This document shows, piece after piece, positions 48,201 through 50,793 of a stretch of DNA of 64,000 bases (the stretch's first letter is position 1; each line of letters starts with the position of its first letter). The stretch lies in contig CM052826.1 in assembly GCA_028534125.1 (NCBI GenBank), positions 20,026,001 through 20,090,000 of the forward strand. Reading direction: 5' to 3'. The DNA comes from Lama glama. Taxonomy: Eukaryota. Position numbers and translations under genes: made by a program. Below the pieces are notes generated by a model. The model did no database searches, was not told where the DNA came from, and saw only the letters and a program-made list of their open reading frames with translations.

Positions 48201-50716
48201 GCCCGCTCCCCCTACCCTAGCCGCACCCTTGAGTTTTGACCTTCCACCCCTGGGAAGCCCCAGCTGCCCCAACCAGGTCAGAGAAGAGGAAGGATCTCTG
48301 CTTGGTGTGGAGGAGTGCTGTCTCCTGGGACCTGGTGTGGTCGTGGGAATCCCAGCAAGAAACCCCGCTTTGCTCCTCTTGGGGAGGGGGGGAGCCTGGA
48401 TCGGGCTCACTCGGACAGGTCACCTTCTGATTCCCACTCAGTCCTTGAGTTCCCCATCGCCAAGTCTGGCCCCGCGTCCCAGGGTCTGAGCCCGGCTCTG
48501 CCGGCTCTGTCACAGTGACCACATGACACCCAGCCAGGGCACCATCCCCCAAGTTTCCTTGAAGGGACCAGCGATGCTCTCCTTGTGTTTTAATGCTACC
48601 CCCCCCCCGGGGCCACACACTGGCTACTTTTTGACATATGAGATGTTTCTCAAACTGCTGCAGACCCCCGGCCCCTCAGAAAAATCCCCCCAAAGCCAAG
48701 GAGCCCTCCACCAACATCACTCGAAGCAAATCTACTTTAAGTCACGAGTGAGTCAACGCAGCCGCAGTGGGTTTGACCTCCCGATGGGGAGTGCTGGTGC
48801 TGGTGACAGGACCTGAGTTTCCTTGGGGAAGGGGTGAGGGGACAGAAAGACAAGGTGGCCCCTGATGGGGGCCGTTGGGGGTACCCAGCCCTCTAGTCTC
48901 CTCCCACCCCTGACCAACTAGAAGGAAGTCATTTCAGTTTCCCAGAAAGTGGTCAAGAGCGCTGCTTCTGGGGGCGCTGGCCACGATGGTGGAGGCCAGG
49001 GATATTACAGGAGGTGCTGGTGGGGACAGTCACGGGGGAGGTGGTGCTGGCTCTCTTGATGTCAGCACTGCTGTGGGCGCTGGTGACTAAGATGTGGCTG
49101 GCGTGGTTAAGGTGGAGTCGTGGTAGAGAGGTGTTGCTGGCCATCGTGGGGATCCGCAGGGATGCTACTGATCAAGGCGTTACTGACAGTGGTGGTTGGG
49201 GAGCTGCTGGCCGTGGAGCTGGTGGTGTGGTGACCGATGGTGCCTAAGGTGTTGCAGGCCACAAATGTATTTATGGTGATGGTGTTGTTGGTGGTCGAAG
49301 TGCTGCTGGCCAAGGGGTGTTTATGGTTGCGGTGCCTGACGTTCTGCTCACGATGTAGGCGGTTGAGGTGCTTCTGGGGTGGAGCTGGTCTTTCATGGTC
49401 AGCAGCAAATCTCCGGGGAAGACGGCAGCCTGGGGGACTCTCTGTCAGGCTCTGGGGTGGATCTGCTTTCAGCCCAGGCCCCCGGAGAGATGCTGCCACC
49501 CACCCTGCCCATGGTACCCATGCTGCCCACCACGGTGCCCGCCACGATGCCCACCACAGCCCCTGCCACGGTGCCCACCACAGTGCCGACCACAGCCCCC
49601 ACCACAGTGCCCGCCACGGCCCCTGCCACGGTGCCCACCACAGTGCCGACCACGGCCCCCACCACAGTGCCCGCCACGGCCCCTGCCACGGTGCCCACCA
49701 CAGTGCTGACCATGGCCCCCGCCACAGTGCCCACCATGGTACCCGCCACAGCGCCCACCACAGCCGCCCCCCTCAGCCTCTCCTCCACCCCAGGCTCCAC
49801 GTGCAACACGTGCCCTGAGAAGTGGGTCAGTTTCCAAAGGAAGTGTTACTACTTTGGCGAGGGCGCCAAGAAATGGATCCAGGCCCGCTTTGCCTGCAGC
49901 GACTTGCACGGACGGCTGGTCAGCATCCACAGCCAGGAGGAGCAGGTGGGCCTGGGTTCCGCTGAGGGCGCGCTGGTGGGAGATCTGCAGATCCCACCCC
50001 CACCTCCTGGATGATGCTCGTGGCAGTGGCGGTGGTGTTGGGGAGGGGGACGCAGGCACGTCTCCCCAGCCCTCCTGCCCTGTCCTGCTCCCCAGGACTT
50101 CCTGACCAAACACGCTAACAAGAGGGGCTCCTGGATTGGCCTCCGGGACCTGGACATTGAGGGGGAGTTCATCTGGATGGACAAGAAACCCCTGAACTAT
50201 AGGTGAGGAGGGGGGAGGGGGGCCTTTCTGGGATGAGAGGAGAGGGTATTTGGAGGGCATGTGCCCCAGGCCCATGGGGAGCTTCTGGACTGCAGCTGAG
50301 GTCGGGGAGTGGTGCAGAGGGGGCAGGGGCTGTCAGGGTCCACATCTCGGGGCACATCCCAGGAGACTCAGGGCCGAGGCAGATGGTCAGGGTTTGGAGG
50401 CAGGTCCAGACTAAGGGGAGAAGAAGGGGATGAGGGTGTCTCCAGGATGCAGGGAGTTGGAGTGGGAATCCAGGGATGGTGTGAGGAGGGCCCAGACTTG
50501 GAGGGATGGGTCGAGGGTGAAGGCAGTGGGAGCCCTCCCTCTCCCCCACCTTCCGACCCCGAATCCTTCTCTTTCAGCAACTGGCAGCCGGGGGAGCCCA
50601 ACGACGCGGGTCAGGGCGAGAACTGCGTGATGATGCAGGCCTCCGGGAAGTGGAACGATGCCTTCTGCAACAACCGGCTGGACGGCTGGGTGTGCGACCG
50701 GCTGGCCGCATGCTGA
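42292..50716 (+). CDS. FCER2: CD23, low-affinity IgE receptor (isoform a), 289 aa
   Basis: Exons 42292-42313, 43320-43436 (TM), 43756-43809, 46941-47003, 47190-47252, 47364-47426, 47553-47642, 49794-49945, 50096-50202, 50578-50716; total 870 nt. Protein MEESSFSD...RRRCC...[24 protein letters not shown]...[17 protein letters not shown]...[15 protein letters not shown]...WVCDRLAAC; three 63-nt stalk exons. Confidence 0.97.
42631..42688 (+). CDS. FCER2: putative CD23b alternative first coding exon (extended)
   Basis: ATG ACC CCT CAC GGC CAG (MTPHGQ, similar to human CD23b MNPPSQ) in intron 2; the phase-1 donor AAG|GTAGAG at 42688/42689 is in frame with exon 3. Confidence 0.5.
44186..46805 (-). 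mobile_element. Tigger1 (TcMar) DNA transposon remnant in FCER2 intron 4, interrupted by an L1 3' end (44831-~45229)
   Basis: TA|caggcagacctcggagatattgc terminus; transposase remnant [35 protein letters not shown] (ORF 45943-46203). Confidence 0.9.
49523..49762 (+). repeat. minisatellite: 20 x 12-bp units with a 60-bp higher-order period
   Basis: Blocks starting at 49561, 49621 and 49681 are near-identical 60-mers; translates as ([AVML]P[TA]T)n. Confidence 0.95.
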
Positions 50717-50793
50717 GCTCCCGCCTGCTCTGCCCCCTCGGCCCTGGGTCCCCTGGGAGGTGCCCCAAGATGTGGACCCCGACAGCCCCCTGC
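50323..50793. repeat. inverted repeat pair 50323-50379 / 50736-50793 flanking the last FCER2 coding exon
   Basis: The left arm equals the reverse complement of the right arm with 5 substitutions and 1 gap over 58 columns. Confidence 0.9.

Follow-up and report, generated by a model that had tools for sequence, protein, structure and literature searches.

We analysed a window of 64,000 nucleotides of Lama glama DNA (contig CM052826.1 of assembly GCA_028534125.1, positions 20,026,001 to 20,090,000; coordinates below count from the first letter of the window), in which the last coding exon of FCER2, the gene of the low-affinity IgE receptor CD23, is enclosed by a long inverted repeat. One arm lies in the last intron and the other in the 3' untranslated region (3'UTR), and the repeat is real and beyond chance. 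In our judgement it is probably a neutral by-product, namely a young, unselected local inverted duplication such as replication template switching can leave. A first-pass annotation of the same DNA had suggested that the arms form a pre-mRNA switch. The part of this suggestion that stands is a duplex that is predicted to be stable, can exist only before splicing and contains A-C mismatches. The switch itself, whether of splicing, intron retention or editing, finds no support: all tests fit a young inverted duplication that is not under selection, and none speaks for a switch.

An inverted repeat around the last coding exon of FCER2

The core of the repeat joins 54 nt of the last intron (50326-50379) to 54 nt of the 3'UTR (50736-50789) at 91% complementarity, the right core beginning 20 nt past the stop codon. 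By gapped local alignment the arms reach 50297-50379 on the left (83 nt) and 50736-50825 on the right (90 nt), with a score of 96, identity at 73 of the 83 aligned positions and indels of 6 nt and 1 nt; beyond both arm limits the similarity ends abruptly. In its full extent the left arm occupies nucleotides 95-177 of the intron, leaving 198 nt to the 3' splice site, and is G-rich (46% G); the right arm is C-rich (47% C). According to the repeat search and the sequence, the loop between the arms measures 356 nt (50380-50735). It holds the remainder of the intron, including candidate branch region, pyrimidine tract and AG, together with the last coding segment, its stop codon and the initial 19 nt of 3'UTR sequence. 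All these features are given on the + strand. The first-pass annotation had described the same pair at 50323-50379 and 50736-50793, with three or four extra bases and a one-base gap; the weaker outward similarity that it mentioned is recovered in the full-extent arms, and the loop content that it listed (polypyrimidine tract, 3' splice site, exon coding for EPN and WND, stop) can be read off the sequence as claimed.

The gene is FCER2, as had been proposed. It lies on the + strand at about 42631-50716, as delimited by mapping the best camelid protein, P0001, on the window. Searched alone, the last coding exon has as its best solved match a CD23 lectin domain (6pwr_A, annotated 'Fc fragment of IgE receptor II', with E 2.6e-23). 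Chains of human CD23 follow at E values between 6e-20 and 2.7e-16, and C-type lectins of other kinds do no better than E 3e-9. With a 40-residue query from the first lectin exon, all 38 protein candidates were named low-affinity IgE receptor or equivalent, and camelid proteins came first, one at 100% identity and four at 98%. The exons were searched singly rather than as a joined spliced model, and the protein map gives blocks only.

The preceding lectin-domain exon (50096-50202) matches P0001 at 100%. It is followed by the last intron, placed by sequence and protein mapping at 50203-50577 (375 nt; GT at 50203-50204, AG at 50576-50577), which has 63% G+C, 43% G and many runs of three to five G, and whose pyrimidine tract lies at about 50535-50575. 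The coding part of the terminal exon (50578-50716) is supported by CD23 chain matches at E 2.6e-23 to 2.7e-16. Its translation starts with NWQPGEPND and ends with WVCDRLAAC before the stop at 50714-50716, with EPN encoded at 50594-50602 and WND at 50651-50659. The 3'UTR is C-rich (40% C).

Chance, artefact and mobile elements

When the last intron was aligned with the reverse complement of the 3'UTR, the observed score of 96 was reached by none of 200 dinucleotide shuffles, which averaged 23.9 (sd 3.2) and did not exceed 41. Each 30-mer half of the left arm matches only itself and its inverted partner in the 64 kb, against an expectation of 0.00 copies (0/100 shuffles). Among close inverted repeats of the window that are not microsatellites, the FCER2 repeat is the best, and only one other of at least 40 nt was found, at 17138-17987 (71 nt, 80% complementary).

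We also looked for the region in sequencing runs, of which 24 were listed. In 14 DNA runs, carrying 5 organism labels and drawn from 6 studies, between 0.94 and 0.99 of the sampled words of 49800-51400 were present; three of the 14 may have supplied the present DNA, and the reach of the comparison is that of close relatives. A run without one whole arm would lose an estimated 7% or so of the words. We conclude from the 14 DNA runs that the repeat is genuine DNA in several closely related animals. In 6 runs listed as RNA, two of them merely guessed to be so, the proportion was 0.07-0.25.

The complementarity might in principle be a chance product of a G-rich intron facing a C-rich 3'UTR, or an assembly artefact. 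The composition skew is indeed strong (43% G against 40% C), but none of the dinucleotide shuffles reached the observed score, none of 100 shuffles of the region folded as stably (z-score -5.86, see below), and the DNA runs keep at least 0.94 of the words. We regard this explanation as next to negligible.

A second alternative is a mobile element, present either as two copies that form the arms or through its terminal inverted repeats. In mammalian genes, close inverted repeats are usually pairs of short interspersed elements (SINEs), and the window has a likely pair of this kind at 17138-17987. Against this, the FCER2 unit occurs merely twice in 64 kb, it is 83-90 nt long with 69-72% G+C, and neither a poly(A) tail nor flanking direct repeats were seen. 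Moreover, the interior is an ancient coding exon common to all CD23 proteins, which makes a single inserted element impossible. Mobile elements are thus a very improbable source, and both a SINE pair and a miniature inverted-repeat transposable element were rejected within the window on the copy number and the nature of the interior. A search of Rfam gave 6 matches at E up to 1, the best with 23.4 bits against thresholds of 50-97, and none fell on the arms.

The pair at 17138-17250 and 17879-17987 consists of 71 nt at 80% and 54 nt at 72%, with 628-742 nt between the copies, and by its look it probably represents two SINE copies in opposite orientation. A low-complexity inverted repeat is also formed by a (GT)n microsatellite at 60746-60797 and a CA-rich stretch at 61059-61130, about 280 nt apart.

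A predicted stem in unspliced RNA

As free RNA, 50280-50840 is predicted to fold at -315.8 kcal/mol, compared with -268.6 ± 8.1 kcal/mol for shuffled sequences (z -5.86, 0/100 as stable), and both the minimum free energy (MFE) structure and the centroid include the long stem. For the arms alone the predicted energy is -111.3 kcal/mol in the core and -156.1 kcal/mol in the full extent. In the context of 49960-51300, matched core positions pair with their partner at probabilities of 0.89-1.0, save the last two at the inner end, and the mean over the 54 core positions, mismatches counted in, is 0.90. Without the right arm, the prediction gives the left arm a weak pairing with 50457-50497 in the intron; once the right arm is added this pairing is replaced and the MFE is about 101 kcal/mol lower.

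These figures are equilibrium predictions for naked RNA, and the model takes no account of proteins, of helicases or of when splicing occurs. As naked RNA, the stem would almost certainly form. The duplex is possible only while the last intron is present, that is, in unspliced RNA.

Probable origin by local inverted duplication

The repeat consists of one short segment, copied once, as a reverse complement, a few hundred bases away and with sharp limits, and on these grounds we assign it to template switching. This assignment, the most likely in our view, rests on resemblance. In such an event, a polymerase would briefly copy the nearby opposite or nascent strand and produce a single local inverted duplication, the 3'UTR copy probably being the source and the copy halfway along the last intron the product. 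The segment of 83-90 nt now stands twice, in opposite orientation, within 530 bp, and the copies would have drifted apart to the present 12% and two indels. In the pre-mRNA they can form a long imperfect duplex closing the 356-nt loop, which encloses both the 3' splice site and the exon that ends the coding sequence. This duplex would be an unselected by-product and not a dedicated switch, with some ADAR editing and slightly slower removal of the last intron as possible consequences. We infer the mechanism of origin, the copying direction, the age and the neutrality.

According to Loytynoja and Goldman (2017, PMC5453318) and Monttinen and Loytynoja (2022, PMC8794818), in their accessible parts, a single template switch can generate both a reverse-complement copy and a perfect stem. 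The FCER2 repeat resembles the mutations in these accounts in being a nearby reverse-complement copy with sharp limits, whose stem, perfect at first, would have decayed by point changes. It differs from them in being larger (about 85 nt) and farther from its source (about 450 bp) than the short events selected there, as far as the accessible text shows, and in that no ancestral state is available to show the event.

The 3'UTR arm is probably the original. This rests on a weak hint, the collinear alignment of a bear CD23 model, which reads into its own 3'UTR, with 50761-50898 (E 0.004, 30% identity). Homology of the right arm to C-terminal extensions of CD23 was also sought by comparing the 3'UTR frame with solved structures, none of which matched even at a cutoff of E 10. 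Since most CD23 proteins (31 of 38) end at ...LA[TA]C and have no extension, proteins say little about the homology of the right arm.

The window contains two further + strand lectin exons with both EPN and WND, at 4145-4270 (EPNNHGDEDC...WICEKPS) and 24569-24691 (EPNDSLGREDC...WICEKRHQC), which are presumably the last exons of CD209/CLEC4G-type neighbours of FCER2. In these paralogous C-type lectin genes (EPN at 4145 and 24569), the complementarity of intron and 3'UTR is not above that of shuffles, 94/200 and 42/200 of which reached the observed score, compared with 0/200 for FCER2. A 27-nt pair with 74% complementarity at 24303/24721 is within chance. An architecture shared by the gene family was rejected for this reason, neither paralogue having significant complementarity.

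Differences between the arms

Over 83 aligned positions the arms differ by 10 substitutions (12%), in addition to the 2 indels. Six are transitions, giving three G-U and three A-C oppositions, and four are pair-breaking transversions. In the core we found three A-C mismatches (A at 50335, 50364 and 50767), one A-G (50356/50759) and one U-G (50368/50747), so that the mismatch types given in the first-pass annotation are reproduced by the alignment; two of these five core differences are CpG-to-CpA changes.

A transition yields G-U or A-C depending on which base changes, and a 1:1 split is therefore expected if there is no constraint. Selection for pairing would favour G-U, and the observed 3:3 split thus shows no bias towards pair-preserving changes. 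The arm differences are consistent with neutral drift in this respect, although the counts are small.

The Kimura two-parameter distance between the arms is 0.132 overall and 0.101 in the core. The neutral rate in mammals is 2.2-3 x 10^-9 per site per year. Combining the two dates the duplication, very roughly, to 17-30 million years ago, an age that gene conversion between the arms would make appear younger than it is. This interval is close to the time at which Old World and New World camelids separated. Both groups or just one of them may carry the repeat, which, if neutral, is expected to be missing from other orders.

Several points weigh against a neutral duplication by template switching. 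In the accessible text of PMC5453318 the template-switch events are short (the filter was 'at least 10 bp'), and a copy of about 85 nt over about 450 bp finds no match among the catalogued events in the parts of PMC5453318 and PMC8794818 that are accessible. The lineage restriction, the age and the copying direction were inferred without an outgroup. The duplex is unusually strong (-111 kcal/mol in the core, -156 kcal/mol in full) and brackets the exon precisely. The core is also less diverged (5/54) than the outer part (5/29 and both indels), on numbers too small to carry weight. Compensated double changes are invisible between the two arms of one genome, and the drift pattern for this reason cannot exclude selection for pairing. 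Finally, exon-looping structures in human genes are reported as depleted and tied to lower exon inclusion (accessible part of PMC8052449), and such lower inclusion implies that a stem of this kind may have an effect.

Splicing of the last intron

We considered the possibility that selection maintains the stem to regulate removal of the last intron, in which case closure of the loop or the binding of double-stranded RNA (dsRNA)-binding proteins would delay or gate splicing. Part of the transcripts would then keep the intron and encode a CD23 without its Ca2+- and sugar-binding half. Several observations fit. The stem is predicted with a probability of about 1.0 at matched positions and only before splicing, and the right arm both lowers the MFE by some 101 kcal/mol and displaces the left arm from 50457-50497. 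If the last intron were retained, the frame would stop at once, one codon past the preceding exon (AGg tga), and the protein would be left without EPN, WND and its final cysteines. The lower inclusion of looped-out human exons is accompanied in PMC8052449, as far as its text is accessible, by a looped-out alternative terminal exon, that of FGFR1OP2.

The position of the splice signals speaks against this regulator. The helix begins 94 nt past the 5' splice site, and the loop contains the candidate branch adenosines, pyrimidine tract and AG at a depth of 150-200 nt, so that no splice signal is sequestered in the modelled helix. As FCER2 has a sole terminal exon, looping it out has no alternative exon to favour, there being no downstream exon to switch to. 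Pair-preserving differences between the arms are not in excess, the paralogues are without a repeat, and 5/5 camelid CD23 proteins end with the normal last exon. We consider a selected splicing regulator improbable.

With the intron alone, the predicted accessibility of the pyrimidine tract was 0.14; it was 0.25 in the construct that stops just short of the right arm and again in the one that just includes it. These values are low throughout, as in silico the tract, being rich in C, is mostly paired with G runs of the intron, irrespective of the inverted repeat. Masking of the tract by the G-rich left arm, to be relieved when the right arm competes for it, was considered and rejected, given that the left arm is predicted to pair with 50457-50497 and not with the tract before the right arm is there, and that the accessibility stays at 0.14-0.25.

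CD23 models of other orders have varied 3' ends. Those of pangolin (P0021, P0023), seal (P0027) and bear (P0034, P0035) end after the penultimate exon or read into the 3'UTR, the seal model ending in other sequence after the penultimate exon. They are predicted models, and they hint at alternative FCER2 3' ends in mammals. The two pangolin models, which end right after the penultimate exon, suggest that mammals may have transcripts lacking the last exon and could be counted in favour of a regulator, but they come from another order, are predictions and have no link to the repeat.

In the literature covered, from which subscription journals were outside the scope, the accessible text contained no paper linking FCER2 with intron retention or inverted repeats. 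Pairs of conserved complementary regions (PCCRs; Kalmykova et al. 2021), as presented in the accessible part of PMC8052449 with FGFR1OP2 as an example, are a close parallel. There too, an exon lies between two regions of the same pre-mRNA that are complementary and form a very stable predicted duplex. However, PCCRs are defined by cross-species conservation, and the FCER2 repeat is documented here no farther than close relatives. In addition, one FCER2 arm is exonic (3'UTR) and not intronic, and the exon is the sole terminal one, whose skipping would have no alternative product.

Inverted repeats that bracket an exon also drive the formation of circular RNAs. In contrast to those cases, the FCER2 exon is terminal, with the right arm inside its own 3'UTR, and there is no downstream 5' splice site. 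Circular RNA requires such a site, and 31/38 CD23 proteins end here; back-splicing is impossible as no donor follows the terminal exon.

A narrower version of regulation would be specific to the lineage. A camelid duplex between intron and 3'UTR would recruit ADAR1 or dsRNA-binding proteins and slow the removal of the last intron, giving a tunable amount of truncated CD23 in activated B cells. The retention stop would lie downstream of the last exon junction, and the transcript would therefore likely escape nonsense-mediated decay. If true, this would mean that a new regulatory element was born in one mutational step; we hold it to be quite improbable.

RNA editing

The intronic arm could alternatively act as an editing-site complementary sequence that guides ADAR to the 3'UTR arm, and the reverse, the resulting inosines altering regulation by the CD23 3'UTR. 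In its favour, intron and exon form an imperfect duplex whose core measures 54 bp (83 bp if bulges are included) and which has three A-C mismatches. Of these mismatched adenosines, however, only 50767 stays in the mature mRNA, and the arms are poor in A. ADARs prefer a U or A as the 5' neighbour of the edited adenosine. The 5' neighbours of the three adenosines are C, G and C, none of them favoured. The first-pass annotation had called A-C mismatches favoured ADAR sites, and this agrees with the ADAR preference stated in the accessible part of PMC10244592, where antisense sequences of at least 60 bp also recruit endogenous ADAR. A-to-I sites are likewise enriched in complementary pre-mRNA regions (PMC8052449, accessible part). 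No paper linking FCER2 to ADAR editing was found in the accessible text of the literature covered; one candidate uses FCER2 merely as a marker. On balance we find a dedicated role in editing doubtful.

Known exon-intron substrates of ADAR with an editing-site complementary sequence include the Q/R site of GRIA2 and Gabra3. FCER2 resembles them in the pairing of intronic with exonic sequence, in a duplex that precedes splicing and in its A-C mismatches. They are conserved and edit a coding site, and their complementary sequence is usually in the downstream intron; in FCER2 an upstream intron faces the 3'UTR, and the neighbour context is poor. Given the published work on looped-out exons and on ADAR, some editing together with some slowing of last-intron removal is plausible even for an unselected duplex.

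Meaning of the repeat

If the repeat is neutral, it offers a clean, datable example of one replication error that placed a duplex of about -110 kcal/mol round a coding exon of an immune receptor and left the gene intact. Claims of splicing regulation by exon-looping structures could then be held against it as a natural control. Should the repeat have an effect, it would be a regulatory RNA structure that arose in one step in one mammalian family, and its site would be the receptor half that binds sugar and Ca2+. The accessible parts of PMC6791321 and PMC8255853 indicate that most mammalian CD23 keep the sugar-binding residues, and that human CD23 has apparently lost carbohydrate binding.

Other features of the FCER2 region

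Residues 1-19 of P0001 map to 42631-42687 at 95% identity, which fits a first coding exon. Directly upstream of the first lectin exon is a tandem array (49524-49778) with periods of 12, 24, 36 and 60 nt, including a 60-nt unit in 4 copies with 88% matches. The array is open in the frame of the first lectin exon and would encode a repeat rich in Pro, Thr, Ala and Val.

Over about 2 kb past the FCER2 stop (50717-52696), the plus strand has no AATAAA, ATTAAA or AGTAAA; the closest look-alike of a poly(A) signal found by eye is AATAAC near 51272. Farther downstream, an open reading frame of 188 amino acids beginning MEARFTRGKSALLERALARPRTEV lies on the - strand at 54524-55090, convergent with FCER2; from its translation it looks like TRAPPC5.

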